Source: Blastocladiella emersonii ATCC 22665
Lineage: Eukaryota; Fungi; Blastocladiomycota
Assembly (NCBI GenBank): GCA_025594325.1
Contig: JANHCV010000001.1
Span: 3,968,001 to 4,032,000, forward strand
Length of the DNA: 64,000 nt
Reading direction: 5' to 3'
Made by a program: the position numbers and the translations under genes. The notes beneath the pieces were generated by a model. The model searched no databases and was not told the DNA's origin. It saw only the letters and a list, made by a program, of their open reading frames with translations. This document shows, one piece after another, positions 139-51,244 of this stretch; the stretch's first letter is position 1; every line of letters begins with the position of its first letter.

Positions 139-492
139 ATGGAATCACAACCAAACTCGGCCATCAACGGCCCTGGCCCCGCGACCGTCGACCCAGCGGC
201 CGCCCTCGGCGCCGTGCTCGCGGGTCCTGCCGATGCCATCGCGGCTTTGGCACGCGGCTACGTCGTCGATCGCTTCATCCGCACGCACCCACGCTTCGAC
301 CCGGCGGCCTCGCCGCTACCGTCGGCCTGGTATCGGGCCATCGAGCATAGCTTGACTTACGCTGACATTCCGTTCGCCGAGCGCGTCGAGTGCATCCTTG
401 GCCTCATCGACGCGCCCGAATTCGTCATGTACGTCAAGAGCGAGCTTCTCCAGCTTGAGGACTCGTCAAGCACGTCAATGTACGAACGGTAA
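139..492 (+). pseudogene. Truncated Gag-capsid-like family member (copy A, N-terminal part only)
   Basis: GYVVDRFIRTHPRFDP..SAWYRAIE..RVECILGLIDAPEF matches the N-termini of the copies at 699 and 43.4-51.2 kb (closest to copy G). It stops after 117 aa. Confidence 0.75.
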
Positions 493-698: not shown

Positions 699-2207
699 AT
701 GAAAATATCTGCAACTAGAGGCAACGACGCCCTTGACCCGGCCTCGGTGCTCGGCGCGGCCTCCGCCGACCCGGCCGCGATCGCAATCCTCGCCCGCGGC
801 TATGCCGTCGACCGTTTCGTTCGCGATAACCCCCGTTTCGACCCGTCGACGTCGAACTCGCCGATCGGATGGCTCGAGCGTGTCGAGGCGAGTCTCGATC
901 TCGCCGCCGTCCCCACGTCGTACCGCGTCGAGTGCCTGCTCGGTTTGATTGACAGCCCCGACTTCCTCGCGATCGCCAAGGACGAGCTACTCCAGCTCGA
1001 CGACCGCTCCGACTCGATGATGTTCGAGCGTCTTCGCGAGTTCTTTATCGCGACCTTCGCGCCGTACGAGCGCCATCTGGCCGATGTCGCAACTCGCCAC
1101 CTGCGCTCGCTGTGCCCCGACGGCCGATCGGACGCCGAGTTCTACCTCGCTTTCCGCGCTGCTCTTCTCGATATCCCGCTCGGCTTCCGCATGCCCGAGG
1201 CCGAAGCGACGAGCCTCTTCATCGACGCGGTCGGCCGTGACCGCTTCCCCGCCGACTTTGACGCCGATGGCTGGACGCTACCCCAGACGTACGCCGAGCT
1301 CTGCCGCACGACATACCTGGCCGAGAACCCGCAGGCGGCCGAGGAGTCAAAGGAGGAGCCCAAAATTGCCACCAATGAACCCGTCGCCGACGCGCAGGCC
1401 AAGCCCGAGATCGCTGGCGATGCCGCCCCGGTCCCGTCCACATCGGAGGCGGATCTCGCCGAGTCGGCTTCGTCCACCAACAAGGCGGCCGAGGAGATCG
1501 AGGACACGGCCGACGTTGCCGAGTCATCCAAGGATGCGGCCCCCGCTGCTGCCGTCGAGCCGATTGCCGAGCAGGCCAAACCGATCCAGCCTTCGCCGAG
1601 CCCCGCGCGGTCCAAGAAGGCGCGCAAGAAGAAGCCGGCGGCGGGCCCGCCGCCCAAGTCGGCTTCTCCGCCCGCTGTTGCTGCTCAACGGCAGGTCACG
1701 GCGCTGGTCTCGAGCCCTTCCCCCGCCGCCGCTGCCAAGGGCGTGCCCCCGATCGCCATGCCGACGTACAAGTCGCCCGGCCCGATCGAGTGGCACGTCC
1801 CGGCCGCGGGCGACGCGCCGTTCGTCGTCGGCACCATCAACAACGTGCTCGTCGCCGCGCGCCTGCTTCCGTCCACGCAAGAGAGTTTCATCTCGTCCCG
1901 CATCGTGGATCGTGCGGGGCTCAAGATCGACCCGTCCGAGACGGTGGTGCTCGCCGCTCCCGACGGCCCGCCGACCGCGTCGCTGGGTGTCGTCCACGTG
2001 CACTTGGTCGTCGGTCGAGACAAGATTCCGCTCCGGCTTCATGTCGTCAAGGACATGTTCTGGGATATCACGTACTGCCGCGACGGGATCGCGTCGCTCA
2101 CCGTGGTCAACGGCGAGTGCAAGCTGGCCGTCCGCGGCGAGCACGGGCCCGTCCCCGTCATGGTCTTCAAGCGGACCGAGATCCCGCCCTACATGTTCGA
2201 CCGCTGA
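699..2207 (+). CDS. Retrotransposon-derived Gag-capsid + acidic linker + basic patch + aspartic pseudoprotease (copy B, intact)
   Basis: Intronless 502 aa ORF. Gag-like motifs: RFDP..SPIGWLERVE, FERLREFFIATF, LRSLCPDGRSDAEFYLAF, SLFIDAVG. The C-terminus FVVGTINNVLVAARLLPSTQESFIS...WDITYCRDG fits a retropepsin fold with the catalytic D-T/S-G replaced by L-P-S. Confidence 0.8.
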   Translation: MKISATRGNDALDPASVLGAASADPAAIAILARGYAVDRFVRDNPRFDPSTSNSPIGWLERVEASLDLAAVPTSYRVECLLGLIDSPDFLAIAKDELLQLDDRSDSMMFERLREFFIATFAPYERHLADVATRHLRSLCPDGRSDAEFYLAFRAALLDIPLGFRMPEAEATSLFIDAVGRDRFPADFDADGWTLPQTYAELCRTTYLAENPQAAEESKEEPKIATNEPVADAQAKPEIAGDAAPVPSTSEADLAESASSTNKAAEEIEDTADVAESSKDAAPAAAVEPIAEQAKPIQPSPSPARSKKARKKKPAAGPPPKSASPPAVAAQRQVTALVSSPSPAAAAKGVPPIAMPTYKSPGPIEWHVPAAGDAPFVVGTINNVLVAARLLPSTQESFISSRIVDRAGLKIDPSETVVLAAPDGPPTASLGVVHVHLVVGRDKIPLRLHVVKDMFWDITYCRDGIASLTVVNGECKLAVRGEHGPVPVMVFKRTEIPPYMFDR

Positions 2208-3022: not shown

Positions 3023-6000
3023 CTAGTGGTGGTTGACGCTGCGCGACACGCTCTTGAACAGGCGCTCGATATCGGGCGCGCACCGCGTGAACCCGTACTC
3101 CCAGAACGTGTACTGCGGGCCCTTGATCAGCTCGATGAACGTGACGAGGAGGCCCCACGGGTGCGGGCGGTTGGCGATGAGCCGCTCGAGGAGCACACGC
3201 GTGATCTGCTCCTGCAGCGCGTCCTCGGCGCCGCCGCCGGCCGCGAGCGCCGACGACGCGGGCTCGGGTTTGCCGTCGGCCCCGACGGGCGCGGGCAGGT
3301 CCTTCTGCGCGAACAAGAACAGCAGCAGGCCGCTGAAGTAGCGCGTGTGCGCGTTCGGGTACCGCAGATGATTGGCGATGGCCGACAGCACGAGGTACCG
3401 GCCCTCCGAGTCGAGGCGTGCGAGCAGGTCGCGGAAGAAGGCAAACTTGGCCTGGCCGGCGCCGCTGGCGGCCGCGGCGGACTCGTTGCCCGACTCGGCG
3501 GCGGCCTTGGCGGCGGCGGCGGCGCCCTCCTCGACGTCCTCGTTACCGGCGAGCAGAACGAGCGCGCTGATGAGCGCCACATTGTACGTCGAGCCGGTGA
3601 TCTCGTCAGTCGCGCCGTCGGCGAGGCGGAGCTTGGCGACGGCGGCCTCGGCGTCCCACGCGCGGTCGCTGAGCCCGGCGTCGAGCACGGTGCGGCTGAG
3701 CGCGTCGAGCGGGATGACGGGGATGGTGCTCGTGTCGGGGAGCATGTCCATGCGCAGGTTGAACGTGAAGGGGTCGGGGAGGCGCATGGTGCGCGGGAAC
3801 GCCGACAGGATCAGGTTGCGCAGCTGGAGGCACCCGGACGGGATCACAGCGCACAGCGCGTAGTAGTACTCGCACAGGAACTCGGGGAAATCGTGCAGCA
3901 GGACCAGGAGCACGCGCAGCGTGCCGCGGTACAGGTGCAGCGTCGGCTCGCGCAGCCAGCCCTCGCGCAGGAACGGGACCAGGAACCGGAACAGCGCGAG
4001 GAGGAGCCGCGAGAACATGGGCCACCCGCGCCGCTCCTCCTGGAGCAGCAGCTTGGGCATGAGCTGCCGGTGCGCGACGAGCGTGAGCCACGAGAAGGCG
4101 AACCCGGGGAGGAACATGGGTTGGAGCGTGTGGATCGTCTCGGCCATGGACTGCAGCATGTAGAAGTACACGGGCTGGAACCCGGCCTCCTGCGCGTTGA
4201 GCTCGTACAGCAGCGACGACAGCAGGCGGAAGTACGGCCGCTGGTTGAAGGCGCGCTGCTGGGTCTCGTGCGCGGCGACGAGCACGAGCACGATGATCGA
4301 CACGATCTTGTTGAAGAAGGCGAGGCGCGACTGCTGGTGCGGGAGCGGCGCGGTGCCGTTGGCCTCGGCGCCGTCCTTGGCCGCGCTGCTGCTGCCGTTG
4401 GTCTCACCGCCGGCGGCGGGCGCGACGTGGGACTCGTCGTGGTACTTGGTCAGCAGGATGACGAGCTTGGCGAAGGCGTCAATGGCCTGGCACGCCATGG
4501 CGGGGCCGGCTGACACCTTGTACGCCTTGAGCCACGCGTCGATGCTGAGCTCGGTGCACACGCGGAAGAAGAGGCAGAACGTGTCGTCGTTCGAGTAGAT
4601 GACGGACCGCTGCATCTCGCCAATGAACACGCGGAACATGGCCTCGTTGGCGTTCGGGTGCTGCAGGAGCCGCAACCACTCGGCGAACGTGTACGTGAGC
4701 TGCTCGCGGAGCTGGAGCGCCTCGGCGGTCAGCGCCGTGGCCGAGGCCTCGTCGGCCGCCGCCGCCGCGTTCTGCGCAACGCGCTGGCGCAGCGCGACAA
4801 TGAACGCCTTGACGCTCTCGGGCGCCTTGCCCGCCATGACGAGGCGGTGCAGCACGTCGACCGTGTTGAACCAGTCGTTGGGCGTGGCGATCCCGGCGAT
4901 CGCGGGGTTGGTCACGGCAGCGCCGGCCGCCGCGCCCGTCGCGTCCGAGGCGGGGAGCGCGGTGCCCGTGGTCTGCGCGACGAGCTCGATGGCGTACTCG
5001 ATGAGGTTCTTGCCGGCCTCGATGAGGCGGGCCAGCTGCGCGTCGACGTCGGCGACGAGGAGGAGCTGCGCCTTGATGAGCGCGGCCGTGGCCGCGACGT
5101 TGTACTTGCGCTCGTCCTCGGCGTACAGGAGCCACTGGACGACCTCGCGGCCGGCGCGGATCGAGGCGCTGCACAGGTCGCGGAGCACGACCGCGTACAC
5201 CTCGCGGGCGAGGTCCGACGTGGCCGAGTACAGGGGCTGGATCACCTTGGTGCAGAACATGAGCGCGAGGTCGTCGCGCGACGCGTTGGTCGCCGACGGC
5301 AGGAGCTGCGGGACCTGGCGCATCACGACGCGCATCTCGTGCGTGGCGGGGACCTCGGGGAGCGTCGCGTACATGGACGGGGTCGACGTGACCGAGGCGA
5401 GGTGCGACTCGAGGTCGGCCATGGCCTTGGTGAACCGGTCAATCGACTGCTGCAGCGTGACCTCCTCGGACCCGTCCTCGCCGCCGGCGCCCGCACCGAG
5501 CCCGCTCATGCCAGAGTGGATGCTGCCGCGGGAGAACCCACCCATGCCGGCGAGCCCGCCGTGGCCGCCGCCGTACGGCATGCGCGAGTACTCCTCGTAC
5601 ACGGAGAACTGCTGCGGCGTGAGCCCGCCGACCTTGAGGCGGAGCACGTCGGGGAGCCCGGCGAGGCGGGTCCGGTACTCGGCCGCGGTGCCGGGCGGGA
5701 GCTCGTAGAAGGTCTTGCCGACGTCGCGCACCTGCTTGCGCTTCATGAGCGCGGGCGCGAGCTGCTCGTCGAGCTCGGGGATCACCTTCTCCATGGCGGC
5801 GCGCTCAATCAGGCGGCACCCGATCTCGAGGTTGTCGGCAACCGTGACGTGGATGTGCTGCTCCGTGACCTGCTGCTCGGTGACGCCGTTCTGCATCAGC
5901 ATCGAGCGGAGGTACGCGCCCATGTTGAGGCGCAGCGGGTCCTTGCACGTCACGAGCGCGAGGGACCCGGCGAGCTGCTGGCCCATGAGATGCGCGGCCG

Positions 6001-9000
6001 TGCGCACGCGCACCTCGTCGCCCTCGGTGGCAAAGTCCTTGAGCACGAGCTCGCGCGTCGAGATGGCCGCGATCGTGACGGACCGCTCGACGACGGGGCC
6101 GAGCGTCTCGCGGATCGCGCGGTCGAAGGCGACGTGCACGAGCCGCTTGGCGTGGATCGGGAACGTCGGGATGAACACGATGAACGAAGCGAGGTTCTGC
6201 AGCGTGATGTGCGCGTACGCCGCGGCGCCCGCGTTGACGGGCTGCGCAATGCCGCCGGCGACACCGCCAGCAGCAGCGAGGAGCGCGTTGGGCGCGTGCG
6301 CCATGGCGTGCGGGTCGCCGCCGAAACCGGCGGGCGGGTGGCCCATGCCGCCGGGTACGAGGGCGCCACCGGCCGCACCGGCGGGGCCGGCGATCCCGGG
6401 CGGAACGACGACGCCAGCGAGGTCCGCGGCGCCGGGGAGGCCGAGCGGCGCGGCGATGCCGAGGCGGCGGGCGCGCAGGAGCTCGGTGGGCTTGACCTCG
6501 GACAGCTCGATGGCGATGCTCTTGCACAGCACCTCGATCTCGAACTTGAGGTTGAGCTTGATGTCGGCAAAGTGGTACAGCTCGACGAGCAGGCCGAGGA
6601 TGGCCATGAGCCACGGGTTGGGCGGGACGAAGACCGACGAGTGCTTGGCCTGCTGGAGCACCTGGCACACGAATGGCACCACGACCATGAGCCGCTGGTG
6701 GTCGTAGCCCTCGAGGAGGAGCTCCTTGATGGCGAGGTGCTTGTGCTTGATGGGCCGGTCCTGGCCGAGCGTGAGGGCGCCGAGCCACGCGCCAATGTTC
6801 TTGAGCTTGGCGCGCTCGGGCGCCGCCTCGGCCGTGCGGTCCGAGTTGAGCACCGCCTCGGTCAGCACGTACGTGTCGTAGAGGATGCACTTGTCGAGCG
6901 TGCGCGACGCGAACGCGCGGAGGAACGACACGTAGAGCGGCTGGAAGTTGGGCTCGACGGCGGCGCGCACGCGCACGAGGTACTCGGAGAACCACCGGTA
7001 GTAAGCCTCGGTGAGCAGGGCGCGCGCGTCGGCGACCTTGGCCTCGAGGTTGGTCTGCGACAGATTGTTGATGAGGAACAGGATGCGGTCCTTGGCCTGG
7101 TCCGACGGCGGCATGTGCTCGAGCCCGCCCGTGAGCGTCGGGTCGACGACGAGCGCCTTGAACGGCTTGCTCGGCAGCTTCTCCTGCACGAGCTGGATGA
7201 TCTCGGGCGCCGTCTGCACGAGCCCGGGCAGCGTCACGAGCTGCTTGGCAAACGACTGGAACTCGGACACGCGCGGCAGGAACTGGCCGAGCGCGCGCAG
7301 CCCAAAGTGGAACATCTTGGTCGTCTCGGGCTGCGACAGCGACTCGAGGATGAACTTGAGCGCCTCCTCCTGGAGGTTCGGCCCGCCGGCCGCGGCCGCG
7401 CCGTTGGCGCCGCCGCCCTGCGCGGGACCGCCCGTGGGCAGCAGACCGTGTGCGATGAGCTGGCCGAGGAAGTCGGCCGAGAGGGTGAGGTTGCGGTCCG
7501 GGTACGTGTGGAAGAACTTGGCCTCCTCCATGAACGTGGTGACGGTGCAGGCAAAGACGCCCTGCGACGCCTTGTCCTGGGTGTTGCGCAGCGTGACGAG
7601 GTGGTTGATGAAGTCGAGCAGCAGCATCTCCTCCTTGTAGAACATGTCGAACAGGCGCATCGACTGCTCCTCAAAGTCGCGGTGGAACCCGGACTCGCCC
7701 TTGTCGCTGGCGAGCGAGAGCGACGCGAGCGCGGCCGCAAGGTCGGGCGAGAACCCGGACCCGTGGCTGCTGAGCACCGCGACAAAGTGCGCCGCCGTGT
7801 CGTTGGTGAGCGGCGAGTTGGGCGCGTTGAGCTTGACCTTGACGTACTCGACGCACGCGCGGGCAAACGCCTCGCCGTGCTCGTGGATCATCTCGGGCAC
7901 CCACAGCTCGAGGTTGAGGTAGCTGCGGTGCGACGCGAGCGCCGCGAGGTCGAGCGCGAACGTGAGCGGCGTGCGCTTGAGCACGTCGCCCAGCACCTTG
8001 AGGTCCTGGCACACGTCGAGCAGGCGCCGCAGCCGGGAGCTGTCCTCGCGGTGCAGCTCGACCATGCACGCGACCATGGTCGCGGGCGCGTGCGTCCACA
8101 GCCGCGGGAGGACGAAGGCGGAGGTGGGCTTGCCGAGGAGGAACTCCTTGGTGAGCGAGATGACGCGCTCGCCGTGGATACCCGCATCGGGCGACGCGGG
8201 CGCGCCGGCGGGCAGGAGCTGCGCGAGGCCGAGGAGCAGGAGCTCGGGCGCCTGGGCCGAGGCGTTGTGGATGAACTCCTTGACGGCGGCGGTGCACTCG
8301 GGGTGGTCCAGCAGCGCGAGCATGGTGTCGAGCACGTCGAGCGAGTTGAGCGCCTGGTTGGGCAGCGCCGTGATGGGGACGCTGCGGCCGGACCCGGACG
8401 TGGCCATGACGAGCTCCTCCTGCGTCACCACCTTGCGCGTCTCGTTGGCCGGGTAGTCGGCAAAGTTGAACTTATCGGGTGGCGCCTGGATGCTGTGCGC
8501 GACTATGGTGAACTGCGCGTACGCGTTGTGCCACCGGTCGAAGAGCACGTGGATCGGGAACTTGGACTTGGTTGCGCGGCGGTACACGTCGACGATGAGC
8601 TCGAAGCCGCGCAGGTCGCGCACCTGGAACCCGTCGACGTCGAGGCACTTGACGGCCTGCGCCCAGTCGGGGCGGTGCCCGTATTGGTTGACGACCGTGA
8701 CGAACACCTCGAGGTCCCACGTGGAGCGCGGGCTCTTGGTCGCGTTGATGATGGGGGTCCATGGTCCGGGGACGGGGTCCTCGAGGTCCGAGTGCGTCAT
8801 GGCCATGGTGGCGAGCGCGCGGCCGAGCTGCACGGGGTCGCTCAGCGCGCCCGAGACGGCGCGGGCGTTGCCCATGTGCGCGACGAGGCAGCCGTGGAAG
8901 ACATCGGGCGTGTACAGCACGAGGTACCCGGCCTTTCGCAGGAGGGCCGCAATGGACCGGCTACCCAATGAAAGTGTGTGAGTGTCTCGATCGCGTGAAG

Positions 9001-43420: not shown

Positions 43421-44594
43421 CTAGCGATCGAACATGTGCGGCGGGATCTCGGTCCGCTTGAAGACCGGGACCGACACGGGCCCAGTCTCGCCGCGCGCGG
43501 AAAATTTCCACTCGCGCTTGACCATGGTGAGCGACGCGATCCCATTGCAGCCATACATGATGTCCCAGAACGAGATGTCGACGACGTACAGCTTGAGCGG
43601 GCCGCCTGCTTGGGCGTCGGACCAGCCGGCTTCTTCTTCTTGCGCGCCGCCTTCTTTGCGGCCGCAGATTTCGAGGGCTGGGTTGGCTGAGGCGTCACCT
43701 TGGCCTCGGGCACCTCCACGGCCGGTTCAGCCGTTACGTCGGCGTCGAGCGAAGTGGTCTCCTCCGTCGGCGGATCGGCAGCCAGCGGGGTGGTCGCCTG
43801 GGAGGCCGACTCGACGAGCTCCACTTGCGCATCATCATCAACCAAAGCCGGTGCCGACTCGACAGTGTCGACAATCTCGGATTCCGCCTCGGCCTGGACA
43901 GCCGCGTCAGCGGGAGCAACGGCATCGGCCTCGAGCTCGGCCGTTGCCTCGACCGTTTGCGGGTTCTCGGCAAGATAAGTAAGGCGGCAAAGCTCGGCGT
44001 ACGTCTCAGCGAGAGTCCAGCCGTCAGCGTCAAAGTCGGCGGGGAAGCGGTCGCGACCAACGGTATCAATAAAGAGGTTCGTCGCTTCGGCCTCGGGCAT
44101 GCGGAAAGCAGTCGGGATACTGAGGAGAGCTGCGCGGAAAGCAAGGTAAAACTCGGCGTCCGAGCGGCCGTCGGGGCAGAGCGAGAGCACAGGCGGAGAG
44201 TCGCAGCGTCGGCGGCGTGGCGCTCGTGCGGCGCGAAGGTTGCGACGAACAGCTCGCGGAGGTGTCCGTACTGCGCCGAACCAGCATCTTTGTCCAGACT
44301 GCGGAGCTCGTGCTTGACAACTGTGTCAAAGTCAGAGCTGTCGATCAGGCCGAGGATGCACTCGACGCGGTACGAGACGGGGATGCTGGCGAGCTCGAAA
44401 CTCGTCTCGACACGCTCAAGTCAACCGATGGGCGAGTGCGAAGTCGACGGATCGAAGCGAGGATTGTCACGGACAAAGCGCTCGACGGCATAGCCGTGGG
44501 CGAGGGCCGCAATCGCGGTCGAGTCCGCGCAGGCCGCGGCGAGCGCAATAGCCGGATCAGGGGCACCGTTGCCGGTAGTTACATGTATTTTCAT
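43421..44594 (-). pseudogene. Gag-pseudoprotease family copy C (disrupted)
   Basis: TGA at the conserved Trp (44421-44423), a frameshift near 44190, and a deletion near 43600 removing the first half of the protease region. Still ends [13 protein letters not shown]. Confidence 0.85.
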
Positions 44595-44807
44595 GGCGAG
44601 TGAGGGGTTTGAAAGCTTTATGGACGCAGGGATCAGCAACTGCTGCACGCGGCGAGCGGAAAGGCGCTCTCCGCCCTTGAGCGTCACGTTTGCGGCACGT
44701 CACGACTCGCAAACTGCCTCGCACATTTTCGGTACGCGTCGCTCACCCCACACGCGCAATATTAGTAAGTTCAACATGGAGACATGTAATCAAGAGGGTT
44801 GCAACTA

Positions 44808-46430
44808 TTAGCGATCGAACATAGACTGCGGGATCTCCTTGCGGCGGAGGACCACCACGTCCGCGTCGCCCGACTCGGCCAGCGCGCGGAACTTGAACTG
44901 GCCGTTGACGATGCGGAACGACGCGATGCCGTCGCGCCCGTACATGATGTCCCAGAACATGCCCTTGACGACGTGCAGCATGAGCGGGATCCGGTGACGG
45001 CCGACCTCAAAGTACACGTAGACGACGCCCAGGGTCAGCGCACCAGGCGAGTCGGCGGTCTGAACCGACACCTTTCTCGAGGGGTCGATGGTGAGGCCTG
45101 CGAGCTCGACGACGCGGGACGAGATGAAGCTCTCGCCGCACAGCGGGACCAGGCGCGCGGCGACGGACGTGCCGTTGATGGTGCCGACCACGAACGGCGT
45201 ATCGGCGCCGCCGGGCGTGTACGACTCGATGATCCCGAACGAGTCGGAGATCGCGGGCCGCCAGCCGGGCGGCTTGATGGGAAGACGAGTGGTGCTCGAT
45301 GTAGGTGCGGCGGCGGGTTGAGGAGTAGCCGCCGGACTCGGCGACGGCACGCGGGCCTCCTGCAGCGGGCGCGGCGGCGGACCAGTCGGCTTCTTCTTGT
45401 TGCGACTCTTCTTCGAGCGCACGGGCTTGGCCAAAGGCCGAGTCGACTTGAGCTCCTGGGTCGCCTCCGGCATGGGCTCGGTCGTCGTCTCGGCATCCAG
45501 CGAAGCGGCTGGCGCCGAAGTTGGCTCGATGGCCGGCGGCGCGGTCACCTCGGTGGTATTCTCATCGAGCTCCTCCTGCTCCTCGGAATCGACTGGCTTG
45601 ACAGCGCCAGCGGCCTCGGATTCGACCGTCGTCTCGGCGACCGTGCTGTCCGGTGCCGCAGCATCAAGCTTGGGCTCCTCGTTGGAGGTTTCGGTTTCGG
45701 CCGCCTTCGAGTTCTCGGACTCAGCCTCTGCCGAAGTGACCGCGGAGGCCGGTGCGACATCGGGCTCGGGCTCCGCGTCCGACTCGTCCGTCGCCGGCGG
45801 GTGCGCGAGCACGCATTTATGGCGACAGAGCTCCGCGTAAGTCTCGGTCAGCGTCCAGCCCTCGGGGTCAAAGCCGGCCGGGAAGCGGTCGCGGCCGACC
45901 GCCTTGACAAAGAAACCGGCGGCATCGGCATCGGTCATGCGGTAGGGCGCCGGGGTATCGAGGATGGCAGCGCTGAATGCAAGGTAGAACTCGGCATCGG
46001 AGCGGCCGGCGGGAGAGAGCGAGAAGAAGCGCTGGATCGCATCGATGGCGACTTGACGCTCGTACGGCACAAAGGTCGCGACGAAAAACTCGCGGAGCCG
46101 CTCGTAGACCTTGCCCTCCGAGCGGTCGTCGAGCTCGAGAAGCTTGCGCTTGGCGACGGTGACAAAATCGGGGCTGTCGATCAGGCCAAAGAGGCAATCG
46201 ACGCGGTGCGACATGGGCATATCAGCAAGTTCAAAGCTCGCTTCCACGCACTCGAGCCAACCGGTCGGAGAGGTTGAGGTCAAGGGATCAAAGCGAGGAT
46301 TGTCGCGGACGAAGCGGTCCACGACGTAGCCGCGGGCGAGGGCAGCGACGGCAGCCGGGTCGACAGAGGCCGCGCTAAGCGCTTGAGCTGGGTCAAGGGC
46401 GCCGTTGCCGGTAGTTACATGTGTTTTCAT
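44808..46430 (-). CDS. Gag-pseudoprotease family copy D (intact, 540 aa)
   Basis: Same architecture as copy B. Protease-like segment FVVGTINGTSVAARLVPLCGESFIS...FWDIMYGRDGI; ends EIPQSMFDR*. Confidence 0.8.
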   Translation of the reverse strand: MKTHVTTGNGALDPAQALSAASVDPAAVAALARGYVVDRFVRDNPRFDPLTSTSPTGWLECVEASFELADMPMSHRVDCLFGLIDSPDFVTVAKRKLLELDDRSEGKVYERLREFFVATFVPYERQVAIDAIQRFFSLSPAGRSDAEFYLAFSAAILDTPAPYRMTDADAAGFFVKAVGRDRFPAGFDPEGWTLTETYAELCRHKCVLAHPPATDESDAEPEPDVAPASAVTSAEAESENSKAAETETSNEEPKLDAAAPDSTVAETTVESEAAGAVKPVDSEEQEELDENTTEVTAPPAIEPTSAPAASLDAETTTEPMPEATQELKSTRPLAKPVRSKKSRNKKKPTGPPPRPLQEARVPSPSPAATPQPAAAPTSSTTRLPIKPPGWRPAISDSFGIIESYTPGGADTPFVVGTINGTSVAARLVPLCGESFISSRVVELAGLTIDPSRKVSVQTADSPGALTLGVVYVYFEVGRHRIPLMLHVVKGMFWDIMYGRDGIASFRIVNGQFKFRALAESGDADVVVLRRKEIPQSMFDR

Positions 46431-46666
46431 GGTGATTGCGGGGTCTAAAGCTTCATGGGATGGTCATGGGAGGGGAGGGTTGCACAAGGCACTGACCGCT
46501 GTGTTGATGATGGCGTTGCATCAGGTCACGCCCGTTTCCTGTCAAGTCTCGCGAGTTGTCTCGCGCTCGACCTCGTGCGCTCTCCCGGTGCTGGGAATCG
46601 CACGCCAGTTCCGCACACGCTTGGCCGTGAGACAGTGAAGCAAAAACAACAATACAATTCATTCAA

Positions 46667-48302
46667 TCAGCGGTCAAACATGGCCTTGGGGATCTCCTTG
46701 CGGCGGTGGACGACGACGTTCGAGTCGCCATGCATCGTCACGACGCGGAGCTTGAACTGGCCGTTGATGATCTGGAAAGCCGCGATGCCGTCGCGGCCGT
46801 AGAGCAGGTCCCAGAACATGCTGTCGACGACGTGCATCTTGAGCGGGATCCGATGGCGGCCGACGTCAAAGAACACGTAGACGACGCCCAGAGTCCGAGC
46901 GTGCGGGATATCGGCCGATTGGAATGGCATGGTGACCGACGTGTCGATGGTGAGGCCTGCGCGCTCAACCACACGGGCCGAGATTAGGCTTTCGGCGCAC
47001 AGTGGCATCAGGCGCGCGGCGACGGGCGTGCCGTTGATGGCGCCAACTGTGGCGTGCCACGAAGGGCGTGTCGTCCTCGATCGGAACTTTGATTTCGATG
47101 AGGCCGGACGTGGTACGAATCGCAGGCCGCCAGCCGGGCGGCTTGATAGGAAGACGAGTAGTGCTCGATGCGGGCGCCGCGGCGGGTTGAGAAGCGGGCG
47201 CCGGATTCGAGGGCAGCGCGCGAGTCTCATGCGGTAAGCGCGGCGGCGGGCCAGTCGGCTTCTTCTTGCTGCGGCCCTTTTTCGGGCGCACGGGCCTGGC
47301 CGAGGACCGCGTCGGCTTGGCCTGGTCGGCCTCGATCTCGGCCGCACCCGCCGTCCACAACTCGGTGGCAGGCTCAGCGTCAAGGTCAGCGGCAGGTTCG
47401 GCGGCCGGCTCGCCTTTGGCCGTGACGACGTTCGACTGCTCGACGACCTCCGCCATGGTCCCGTCGACTGCGTCTGCTTCGCCGGTCGGCGAAATGGACT
47501 CGGTGACGATCTCCGTGTCCGTATCCTGCGTGGAAGAAGCACTCGCGGCCATGTTGGCGACCTCGGGCTCGACCTCGGGCTCAACCTGCGCGCCGACAGC
47601 TGCCTTGGCAGGTTCATCAACAGTAACCTTGGGCGTCTCCTTAGGATTGTCGGCCACTTGTGGGTTCTCGGCCAAGTACGTGACGCGGCAGAGTTCGGCG
47701 TACGCCTCGTCGAGCGTCCAGCCCGCGGCGTCAAAGTCGGCGGAGAAGCGGTCGCGGCCAACGGCGTCGACGAAGAGATTGACTTGATCGGCCTCGGACA
47801 TCCGGTGCTTGGGAGGAATATCGAGAAGCGCAGCAGAGAACTCGAGGTAAAATGCGGCGTCCGACTGGCCGCCAGGGCGCAGCGAGCGCAGGCGCTGGAT
47901 CGCGGTGTCCGCGGCGGATCGCTCGTGCGGCACAAAAATGGCAAGAAATAGCTGGCAAAGATGCTCGTAGCGTGCCGAGTCGGAGCAATTTTCAAGTTGC
48001 AGAAGCTTTTGCTTGACGACGGCGACAAAGTCGAGGCTGTCGATCAGGCTGAGAATGCACTCGGTGCGGTCCAAAGTCGAGACGTTGGCAAGCTCGAGGC
48101 TCGTCTTTACACGCTCGAGCCAGCCGAACGGTGAGCGAGAGATTGATGGGTCGAAGCGCGGGTTGTCGCGGACGAAACGATCGACGGCGTAGCCGCGGGC
48201 GAGGGTCGCGATCGCAGTCGGGTCGGCGCGCGTCGCGCCAAGCGCAAGGGCAGGATCAAGGACCGGCGCGGTGCCTTTGCTGGAAGTATTGGATGTTTTC
48301 AT
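46667..48302 (-). pseudogene. Gag-pseudoprotease family copy E (single frameshift)
   Basis: Full-length homology from ATG 48302. A 10-nt insertion at 47048-47057 shifts the protease domain into the frame of ORF 46667..48028. Ends EIPKAMFDR*. Confidence 0.8.
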
Positions 48303-48476
48303 GGAGAGTGCAGAGTTCAACGCTTCATGGATCCCGAGGTCGAGGGAGCGGCGACTGACGCGAACGCGGCGCGCGTCAAACTGGCCGGCTCGTCGCGTCG
48401 CTCGCCTCCCGCCAGATCGCTTCGCTGAAGGAAACGCTTGTAATTCAATCATGAAGAGAGATTCGCGATAAAAATA

Positions 48477-49437
48477 TCAGCGATCGAACATGTAGGGCGG
48501 AATCTCGGTCCGCTTGAAGACCACGACGGGGACCGGGTCTGTCTCGCCAAGCACGGCCAGGTTGCACTCGCCGTTGACCACGTACAGCGACGCGATCCTG
48601 TCGCGCCCGTACATGACGCCTCAAAACATCCCGTCAACGACGTGCATCATCAGCGGGATCTGGTCGCGCCCGACCGCCATGTACGCGTAGACGACGCCCA
48701 GCCACATCGTTGGCGGCCCGTCAGGGAAGGTCAGGCGGACCTTGACCGTCTCGTCGATCGTGAGGCCTGCGCGCTTGACGATGCGCAGCGAGATGGCGCT
48801 CACTTCGGCCGACGGCACCAGGCACGCGGCGACGAGCACGTCGTTGATGGTGCCGACGACGAATGGCGCGTCGCCGCCGCCGGGGACGTTGAGCTCGATC
48901 TTGCCGCCTGATCCGCTGGTCGTTACGGTGGCGGGGCGCGGGCTGTTGACTGCGGCGGGTGCAAGCGGGACGTTGGACAAGGGCGCCGCGGCAGGCGCGG
49001 AAACAGGCTGCTGCTGGGGCGACGACACAGCGGTAGCCTGCGTCAGTTGCGTCGGTCGCGTCGGCGGGGCAGCTGCAGCCTGCTTCTGGCCCTTCTTGGT
49101 CCGAACCCGCTTGGCCGAAGGTCGCGCCGTCTTGGACTGCTGGGGCGTGGCCATGACCTCGGCGGCGGCAAGAGCGGCTGGCTCATCCGTAGCCGTCCTC
49201 GACCTCCTCGTCGGCTCTTTGGGCGGGAGGCTCCGGTTCAGCGGGCCCGGCGAGCTTGGACCCGACTTCGGCAGCAGCGGCCAGGTCAGGGGCATTGAGA
49301 ACCAGCTCGGCCGGTTTGCTGACGGCAAGCTTGGGTTCCTCCTCGTTTGGCTGATCGGCCAGTTCCGGTTTGTCGGCCAGGTACGTCGTGCGGCATAGCT
49401 CGGCGTACGGCTCGGCCAGCGTCCAGCCGTCGGCGTG
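48477..49437 (-). pseudogene. Gag-pseudoprotease family copy F (5'-truncated)
   Basis: Homology begins at DGWTLAEPYAELCRTTYLA. It has a frameshift and a TGA at the conserved FW (48621), and resumes to [13 protein letters not shown]. Confidence 0.8.
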
Positions 49438-49608: not shown

Positions 49609-51244
49609 TTAGCGGGCCGGGAGGTCGCGACGCTTCGTCACTGGCACGCTAACCATGCGCTTGCTGATGTCAAGCGCCTTGAGGTCGAACTGCCCGTCGA
49701 TGTTCGAGAACGACTGGACGGCGTCTTTCGCAAAGACCGCGTCCCACGCAATATCGTCCCACACGTACGCGCGCAGCGGGATCTCGTTGCCCTGCACCTT
49801 GAAGATGAGGTTGACGAATCCAGGCGACTCTTCCGTGCCGGCGAGGGACGCGATACGTTTCGGGTCCGTGCGGTCAATGGTCAATCCGGCTTGCTCAACA
49901 ATTTCCGGTGAAACCAAGCACGACTGGGTCTCCGTGTCAAGCAGCGCCAGCGCGGACACCCCGTTCACGGTTCCACACACAAACGGCGTGTCGTCGCCCG
50001 CGGGGCCGTCGATTTCGCCGGCAAAGACCGCAAGCGTATTTTCGTCGACTTCGCCCAGCAAAGGGTTCGTGCTGTCGAGCATCTCGATATTGGGAAGCGC
50101 GCTACGAAGGGCACGGGCCCTGCTGCCATGGCTGCTGCTACTCACGGATCCGAACGTCGCGGGGAAGAGCGGTGCGGCCTGCTGCTGGGCCAAGGCGGAA
50201 GCAAGGTTGCGCGCGCGGTCGGGGTGTGCGTTGCGGACGAGGCGACGCGATACGTCGCGGCTCTTGGCGCGACACTCGGTCACCGCGTGGCCACGACGGC
50301 CGCAGTACTGGCAGTAGCCCTCGGGAACGGCATTATCGACGGACACTGGCTGCTCCTCAGCGGCTGCGGCTGGCTTTGCTTGCCGCTTCGGCTTTGGCTT
50401 GTGGCTTCGGTTTGACCGGCGCGGGCAGTTTTGACGGAATTGAAGCCGAAGGAGTCGCCGGAGCAGCAGCAACTGCGGGGCTGGGCGTGTGAACTTACTG
50501 CACAAAATCGGACTGCGAGTCGACGGAGGGCGACACCGGCGAGGAAATCGTCAGCTCCCTAGGCGCGGGACACAGTTCGGGCTCGGTCTCGGGCTCGACA
50601 TCGCGAAGCCCAGGAGGAGCTCGAAGCACGCGGTACACTTGGTGAAGCGAGTGCTTAGTCGGGTTTAAGCCAGACGGGAAGCGATCGGGACCGACGGCGT
50701 TGTAGTAAATCTGGGCAGCGACAGACTCCGAAGGCCGGGTGTCGGACGAGAAGCTGGCAAGGCATGTGCGGAACTCAAGATGAAAGTCGAGGTCCGAGCG
50801 CCCCGCAGAGCTGAGCGCTGAGAGGCGATCGAGTGCAACCTGGGCCGGGGACTTCGAGGACTCGTCAGGCGCGGGATGCACGAAGGTGCCGGAGAAAAGG
50901 TCGTCGAGGCGAGAGGCTCGCTGCTCGTCGGTGAGATCGGCAAGCGTGGCAAGCTCGTCGTTCGCGTAAACGATAAAGTTCGGTGCGTCGATTAGACCAA
51001 GTACGCGGTTGACCCAGAGCGCGGCGGGGAGGCCCGCGACAGCGAAGCTGTTCTCGATCTGTCGATACCAGGTAGACGGGAAGACCGACGATGCCGGGTC
51101 GAACCGCGGGTTGGTGCGGATGAAGCTTTCGATAACCTGGCTGCGCACAAAGGCCGTGACCGCGACCGCGACCCCACCGGAAGGGCTGGCGAGCAGCGTT
51201 GCGAGGTCGGGCGGGCTGTTGCTGGAAGTTGCATAAGATTTCAT
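49609..51244 (-). CDS. Divergent family copy G: Gag capsid + CCHC zinc knuckle + protease domain retaining the Asp, split over two frames
   Basis: ORF from ATG 51244 (FIRTNPRFDP..STWYRQIE) stops at 50495. The overlapping +1 ORF has CQYCGRRGHAVTEC and FVCGTVNGVSALALLDTETQSCLVS...WDAVFAKD. Could be spliced or a pseudogene. Confidence 0.65.

Follow-up and report, generated by a model that had tools for sequence, protein, structure and literature searches.

Seven copies of a gene that joins a capsid-like domain to a protease-like domain lie in a 64,000-nucleotide stretch of the genome of Blastocladiella emersonii ATCC 22665 (contig JANHCV010000001.1, here contig 1, positions 3968001-4032000; hereafter the window, whose own numbering is used unless a contig is named). 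Two of the seven copies (lettered A to G), B and D, are intact, and the protease-like domain of both has kept a retropepsin fold and lost the catalytic D-[TS]-G triad. On balance, we favor the view that B and D are descendants of the Gag-Pro segment of a retroelement in which a dead but constrained retropepsin domain serves a non-catalytic, structural role. The copies were sought by tblastn, by a whole-genome search (32.65 Mb, 21 contigs) and by six-frame reading. All of them are inside the window, where they span one 51-kb region, and searches of the genome with the protein, with copy G and with a profile of the protease-like domain found no further copy outside it.

Fold and catalytic motif of the C-terminal domain

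The protease-like domain makes up the C-terminal 130-150 residues of the open reading frame (ORF) of copy B. A preliminary description of the window, made from its letters alone, had taken this region for a Gag-fused pseudoprotease, and had named beforehand its modeling as a retropepsin as one of two points on which the idea would stand or fall, the other being that it does not evolve neutrally. The domain does model as a retropepsin of peptidase clan AA, A2-like family, both by profile and by structure. A profile of the domain from five copies matched the RVP domain of Leishmania Ddi1 in the Protein Data Bank (PDB; E = 8.4e-6), with L-P-S standing opposite D-S-G. A profile of the full-length family was searched against 1.84 billion representative proteins and found 75 outside proteins (a count that excludes five models of B. 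emersonii itself), all of which matched the protease part only; the best E-value was 3.5e-11, and the ten best matches were Asp_protease_2 or gag-asp_proteas proteins. The AlphaFold model of the B domain, a monomer, had a predicted local distance difference test score (pLDDT) of 75.6 and a predicted template modeling score (pTM) of 0.71. Foldseek placed Ddi1 RVP first among the structures resembling this model (template modeling score 0.63-0.76, E = 2e-6 to 1e-4), followed by Rickettsia APRc and then by retroviral proteases. Pfam searches with single copies gave no match for B or D, and for G an Asp_protease_2 match of 22.6 bits (E = 1.7e-4), which is below the cut-off of 24.3. Together with the replaced motif, the profile and model matches indicate that the fold has been kept and that the catalytic triad is gone. 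The parts of copy B are as follows, where omega denotes the ratio of nonsynonymous to synonymous substitution rates (dN/dS) and GC3 the G+C content at third codon positions:

699-2207, plus strand: copy B, intact ORF of 502 amino acids with capsid-like domain, linker and pseudo-retropepsin; identical to protein P0001
699-1346, plus strand: capsid-like (Gag capsid, CA) domain with two helical lobes, from AlphaFold model, VIA-align, Atlas look-alikes and omega
1608-1658, plus strand: conserved basic patch in the linker, a Lys/Arg run with P-x-x-G-P-P-P after it, from the alignment of copies
1818-2204, plus strand: retropepsin-like domain without catalytic residues, from profile, model, omega and GC3
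1866-1874, plus strand: L-P-S where active retropepsins have the catalytic D-[TS]-G, from hidden Markov model alignment to the D-S-G of Ddi1 and from 12 remote homologues
2061-2087, plus strand: W-D-x3-C-R-D-G, counterpart of the retropepsin h-h-G-[RK]-D motif, from alignment

The pseudoprotease had first been placed at 1834-2207, which is inside the C-terminal domain of this ORF; the domain proper begins slightly earlier, near 1818.

Retropepsins need D-[TS]-G and act as homodimers, and the Thr of the triad forms the 'fireman's grip'. The D-T-G column reads L-P-S in B, V-P-L in D, M-P-L in E, V-P-S in F and D-T-E in G; none of the five copies that carry the region thus possesses the triad of an active retropepsin. 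D-T-G or D-S-G is found in 11 of 12 aligned remote homologues, at the very column occupied by [L/V/M]-P-[S/L] in B, D, E and F. The five motif strings quoted in the preliminary description are exact (B, 1851-1895 on the plus strand; D, 45120-45164, E, 46979-47023, F, 48789-48833 and G, 49909-49953 on the minus strand), and the flanking motifs that it listed are present (P-F-V-x-G-T-[IV]-N, A-G-L-x-I-D, W-D-x3-[G/C/A]-[R/K]-D and the terminal M-F-D-R). The second retropepsin motif, h-h-G-[RK]-[DN], also has its counterpart, which reads Y-G-R-D-G in D and E, Y-C-R-D-G in B and F-A-K-D-A in G, and which aligns to the G-x-D motif of the remote homologues. The former active-site loop varies among copies (L/V/M, S/L, T/C/A), and the flanking strands and C-terminal tail are conserved, a pattern that agrees better with a scaffold or interface role than with a conserved ligand pocket.

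Over ~130-150 residues, the domains of B, D, E and F share 50-67% amino acid identity, and G is at ~34%. With this identity and the significant profile match to retropepsin domains, chance does not account for the alignment. Since B, D, E and F form one clade relative to G and have the Pro in common, the motif was lost in a single ancestral event, and the loss was inherited by duplication. The Asp is therefore absent from four copies, as had been claimed, but through one inherited loss and not through four. Likewise, the claim that the fold was kept in all four copies agrees with the retropepsin profile and model, except that E and F are broken genes. Copy G, which had been put forward as the Asp-bearing copy, has indeed kept the Asp, but in D-T-E and not in D-T-G; as its Gly is Glu and the gene is broken, it is not a canonical comparator.

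The description of the domain as Gag-fused is supported. The N-terminal 216 residues of B gave an all-helical AlphaFold model (pLDDT 85.1), and the ten best VIA-align matches to this model were all retroelement capsids; first in the ranking came Copia CA (Z 10.3 over 159 residues), dArc1 (Z 8.4), the C-terminal domain of PEG10 CA (CA-CTD; Z 7.9, root-mean-square deviation (rmsd) 2.7 Å), the N-terminal domain of Ty3 CA (CA-NTD; Z 7.9, rmsd 2.3 Å) and PNMA2 (Z 7.6), as well as Arc and Rous sarcoma virus CA. Capsids headed the Foldseek list too, with E-values that are not significant, and the language-model look-alikes in the Atlas were Retrotrans_gag and Ty3_capsid clusters (score 0.96). The capsid-like domain had no Pfam match at E ≤ 10, and its profile had no sequence match in the PDB. 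Between the two domains, a CCHC knuckle (C-x2-C-x4-H-x4-C, with weak Pfam zf-CCHC matches) occurs only in G. At the corresponding place, a Lys/Arg patch with P-x-G-P-P-P after it is conserved in B, C, D and E; the rest of the linker is acidic, Ala- and Pro-rich, and cannot be aligned among copies. The architecture is that of a retroelement Gag-Pro.

Selective constraint, lesions and layout of the array

The preliminary description had taken a motif change retained across diverged copies to suggest selection, and dN/dS estimates show that the domain has not evolved neutrally. For the protease-like domain of the five copies, omega was 0.11 under GY+F3X4 and 0.24 under MGK+F3X4, and a shifted-frame control gave 1.1-2.7. 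The values were nearly the same within the Asp-less clade of B, D, E and F (0.11 and 0.23), for which omega = 1 was rejected under both models (twice the log-likelihood difference 133 and 75, p ≤ 5e-18). For the capsid-like domain, omega was 0.15-0.17 (GY+F3X4) and 0.21-0.24 (MGK+F3X4; p ≤ 1e-32), with a shifted-frame control of 1.8-2.5. The test against omega = 1 was applied to the Asp-less clade and to the capsid sets, and the shifted-frame control to the five-copy protease and capsid sets. Given these similar values, the dead protease domain is as constrained as the capsid domain. B and D hence show what is expected of a host gene, namely purifying selection on an intact frame (omega 0.11-0.24 over both domains), and the retention of the shared motif change across diverged copies supports selection for a non-catalytic role. 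The selection signal is an average over the history of the family and no proof of present function.

Base composition and the extent of similarity also follow the coding sequence. GC3 is 0.84 in the ORF of copy B and 0.91-0.93 in the protease-like domain (0.91 in B), and 0.59-0.64 in the flanks. DNA similarity between copies runs from ~25-30 nt before the ATG to the stop codon, whereas in the linkers and in most spacers the alignment has been lost. The other six copies are:

139-489, plus strand: copy A, a 117-amino-acid fragment with the capsid-like domain only; the match runs on through stops to ~594
43421-44594, minus strand: copy C, a pseudogene with an in-frame TGA at 44421-44423, a frameshift near 44188 and the first two thirds of the protease-like domain deleted
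44808-46430, minus strand: copy D, intact ORF of 540 amino acids; protease-like domain at 44811-45260, V-P-L at 45141-45149
46667-48302, minus strand: copy E, with M-P-L at 47000-47008; its sole lesion, a 10-nt insertion at ~47045-47054, shifts the frame directly upstream of the protease-like domain, and the rest is complete
48477-49434, minus strand: copy F, with V-P-S at 48810-48818; the 5' half (first ~190 codons) is gone, the frame shifts near 49190, and the protease-like domain contains an in-frame TGA (48621-48623)
49612-51244, minus strand: copy G, the most divergent copy, with the CCHC knuckle at 50272-50313 and D-T-E at 49930-49938; its lesions are an in-frame TAA (50496-50498) and a frameshift near 50370

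The published assembly was built from PacBio HiFi reads and polished by Pilon with Illumina reads (PMC9730499), so both the intact and the broken frames are probably real. Spliceosomal introns were considered as the cause of the breaks and rejected. In G, a GTAAGT at the TAA has only 18-26 nt to the next AG, which is too short; in E, the lesion is a 10-nt insertion; and in A, reading beyond an AT-rich stretch meets stops at once. The NCBI models H9P43_001522, 001524 and 001525 draw introns across the lesions of C, E, G and F. We did not follow them; they look like annotation artefacts over pseudogenes. One of these models fuses the protease domain of G to F (49612-51244 with 48624-49154, protein P0005).

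Several features of the array bear on how it grew. A leader of ~30 nt upstream of the ATG (671-698, 44595-44623, 46431-46459 and 48303-48330) is conserved in B, C, D and E and partly in G and A, and the DNA upstream of it does not align among copies. The junction between C and D, including the spacer (43949-45215), is homologous to that between E and F (47650-48884; 68.7% over 1289 nt). In addition, the domain trees disagree: the N-terminal tree groups C with E, with B joining them, and the protease-domain tree is (B,F),(D,E). This junction homology and the tree conflict suggest, from sequence comparison, that the array grew by duplication of a two-unit segment with later exchange between copies. 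Fragment A is nearer to G than to B in several motifs (W-Y-R-x-I-E, L-I-D-A-P), so that an ancestral G-type lineage may once have stood at both ends of the region.

No LTR-like (long terminal repeat) or other flanking direct repeats were found around the copies, the similarity being confined to coding sequence, and none of the 79 matches to RVT_1 (reverse transcriptase, RT) in the genome is in the window. The family therefore lacks both the LTRs and the pol of an autonomous LTR retrotransposon. Copy B is adjoined by an uninterrupted ORF of 1981 amino acids (3023-8968, minus strand; GC3 0.965), which may be a large housekeeping gene resembling Not1 of the CCR4-NOT complex.

Readings of the family

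If B and D retain their dead domain for a structural purpose, events could have run as follows. Their protein would derive from the Gag-Pro part of an LTR retroelement and would consist, in order, of a capsid domain with two lobes, an acidic and disordered linker that contains the conserved basic patch, and a domain of retropepsin fold. The catalytic D-T-G changed to hydrophobic-Pro-Ser/Leu in the copy ancestral to B, D, E and F, after which the domain stayed under purifying selection about as strong as that on the capsid, as the omega values show. According to established retropepsin enzymology, the domain cannot act as an aspartic protease because no Asp is left and because a Pro in place of the Thr abolishes the fireman's grip. 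Since it cannot cut and yet is constrained, we infer that its selected role is structural. Most likely, this role would be that of a non-catalytic module that self-associates or binds peptides and that works with the capsid-like domain. The setting would be a birth-and-death gene cluster kept by the host, without LTRs and without pol.

Several observations weigh against this proposal. Of the seven copies, five carry stops, frameshifts or deletions that break or truncate them. No full-length relative outside the B. emersonii genome was found among the 1.84 billion representative proteins with the family profile, so there is no orthologue to demonstrate long-term retention; judging by these searches, the gene family is only known from this water fungus, and our literature search found no paper describing it. 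The simpler NG86 estimate of pairwise dN/dS was 0.44-0.88, which means that the low omega depends on codon-frequency-aware models; we judged the higher NG86 values to result from the extreme third-position bias (GC3 ~0.9). A distance-based triplet split of dN/dS by branch had too much noise to demonstrate stronger constraint on B and D than on the broken sister copies. Lastly, the variation of the former active-site loop, as read from the alignment, speaks against a conserved ligand pocket at this site.

The main alternative is that a pol-less Gag-Pro segment spread by segmental duplication and is now being lost, in which case the low omega would record past selection, at the level of the element or of the host, and B and D would be no more than the last copies to have escaped damage so far. 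This we regard as possible but not probable. The many lesions, the restriction of the family to a single region of one genome and the noisy branch-wise split are all consistent with decay, and at 65-70% GC a long open frame is easily formed. By contrast, amino acid identity between B and D is only ~55% for the protease-like and ~64% for the capsid-like domain, and still each has kept a frame of 500-540 codons. Moreover, the Asp-less clade has an omega well below 1 whereas out-of-frame controls exceed 1, the domains can still be aligned whereas linkers and spacers cannot, and GC3 stays at a coding level; all of these argue against simple decay.

The preliminary description had also raised the idea of a dominant-negative partner that poisons active retroelement proteases. 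In this role, the domain would form heterodimers with such a protease, or the capsid part would co-assemble with the Gag of the element, and transposition would be restricted, much as by Gag-derived restriction factors. Suitable targets exist among the several retroelement proteases of the genome: at least 16 near-identical copies of a 1286-amino-acid ORF with an L-D-T-G-A protease and RVT_1 are spread over many contigs (for example, contig 6:837740-840889), and they probably represent an LTR retroelement that was active until recently. The structures matched by the capsid-like domain include an endogenised Ty1 Gag CA-CTD restriction factor (Z 6.6), and tandem birth-and-death clusters are typical of conflict genes. 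Nevertheless, searches with the protein, with copy G and with the domain profile found no protease or Gag close to the family elsewhere in the genome: the proteases sampled scored below 8 bits against the domain profile, the best BLASTP match had an E-value of 0.023 over 37 residues, and no Gag of the genome matched the capsid-like domain. The overall omega is that of purifying and not of diversifying selection, and loss of the fireman's-grip Thr should, from established knowledge, weaken any dimer of the retropepsin type. With no close protease in the genome, the idea of a poison partner is weak at present, and we consider it unlikely. It is far less likely still that the domain remains a protease by means of other acidic residues, such as the conserved Glu five positions past the lost Asp. 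An E-S is kept shortly after the motif in B, D and E, but F has Val at that Glu position, the aligned retropepsin relatives use D-[TS]-G, and the Pro at the Thr position removes the hydrogen bonds of the fireman's grip; we know of no such mechanism for the retropepsin fold.

A bolder version of the structural proposal, which we hold to be doubtful, is that B and D are working host genes of an early-diverging fungus, in which a retroelement capsid is in permanent fusion with a pseudo-protease that has taken on a new use in assembly or as a decoy, possibly as a restriction factor against resident LTR elements. If so, they would be a fungal counterpart of the animal Gag-derived genes, and no pseudoenzyme of retropepsin fold would have been shown before to be maintained by selection beside a capsid. 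The structural role that we favor would, if true, already mean that a retropepsin fold can be kept for a non-enzymatic purpose, and the family would offer a natural test case for what this fold can do beyond cutting, such as dimerization, peptide binding or control of assembly.

The genome contains a second, unrelated tandem family of retropepsin-like genes (contig 15:227518-234175; Asp_protease_2, 46 and 40 bits), which likewise lacks the canonical triad and has V-D-L-G-A in one copy and V-N-Q-G-A in the other. On sequence grounds, loss of protease catalysis may be recurrent in the Gag-Pro-derived genes of this genome. The capsid family thereby adds to the indications that gene families have arisen from Gag-Pro segments more than once in B. 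emersonii.

Relation to known Gag-derived genes and retropepsins

Host genes derived from Gag, such as Arc, PEG10 and PNMA, are best known from animals, and their protease, where kept, is thought to be active. The B. emersonii family resembles PEG10, RTL3 and RTL1, which are domesticated Metaviridae Gag-protease genes of mammals, in that a capsid domain is followed by a retropepsin domain, without LTRs or a working pol, and under purifying selection. The dN/dS of the RTL3 protease, 0.11 (PMC11011659), is in the same range as the omega of the B. emersonii domain. The protease domain of PEG10 and the RTL genes has been described as conserved, and that of PEG10 as functionally required (PMC11011659), whereas the catalytic triad is gone in every B. 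emersonii copy. Furthermore, the mammalian genes are single-copy with deeply conserved orthologues, whereas the present family is a tandem cluster, restricted to one species, in which most copies are broken; it is also fungal and has no programmed frameshift.

Ddi1/Ddi2 RVP is the best match of the domain both in sequence and in structure. However, Ddi1 has D-[ST]-G together with UBL and UBA domains, and the B. emersonii family has neither (Pfam found no UBL or UBA) and carries a capsid domain instead. That Ddi1 comes out best is probably a matter of which structures of the retropepsin-like kind have been solved and not a sign of descent from Ddi1. B. emersonii has a Ddi1 orthologue of its own, distinct from the present family (contig 1:2121986-2125279), whose 537-amino-acid ORF (at contig 1:2123486) contains F-V-D-S-G-A-Q-S and matches gag-asp_proteas with 61.6 bits.

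With the Gag-Pro of Ty3/gypsy or Ty1/copia elements, the family shares the order of capsid, CCHC knuckle (in G) and protease, a capsid fold like those of Copia, Ty3 and dArc1, and matches to Asp_protease_2 and gag-asp_proteas in G and in the remote homologues. Unlike these elements, it has no LTRs, RT, RNase H or integrase and no copies elsewhere in the genome, its knuckle has been replaced by the basic patch in the lineage of B, D, E and C, and its protease motif has been lost. The family is thus neither a member of the Ddi1 family nor an autonomous retrotransposon. In their capsid lobes, Arc, PNMA and the endogenised Ty1 Gag CA-CTD factor Drt2 (PDB 9rxy) are similar to the B. emersonii protein (Z 6.6-8.4), but those proteins have no protease domain, whereas here a dead one has been retained and constrained.

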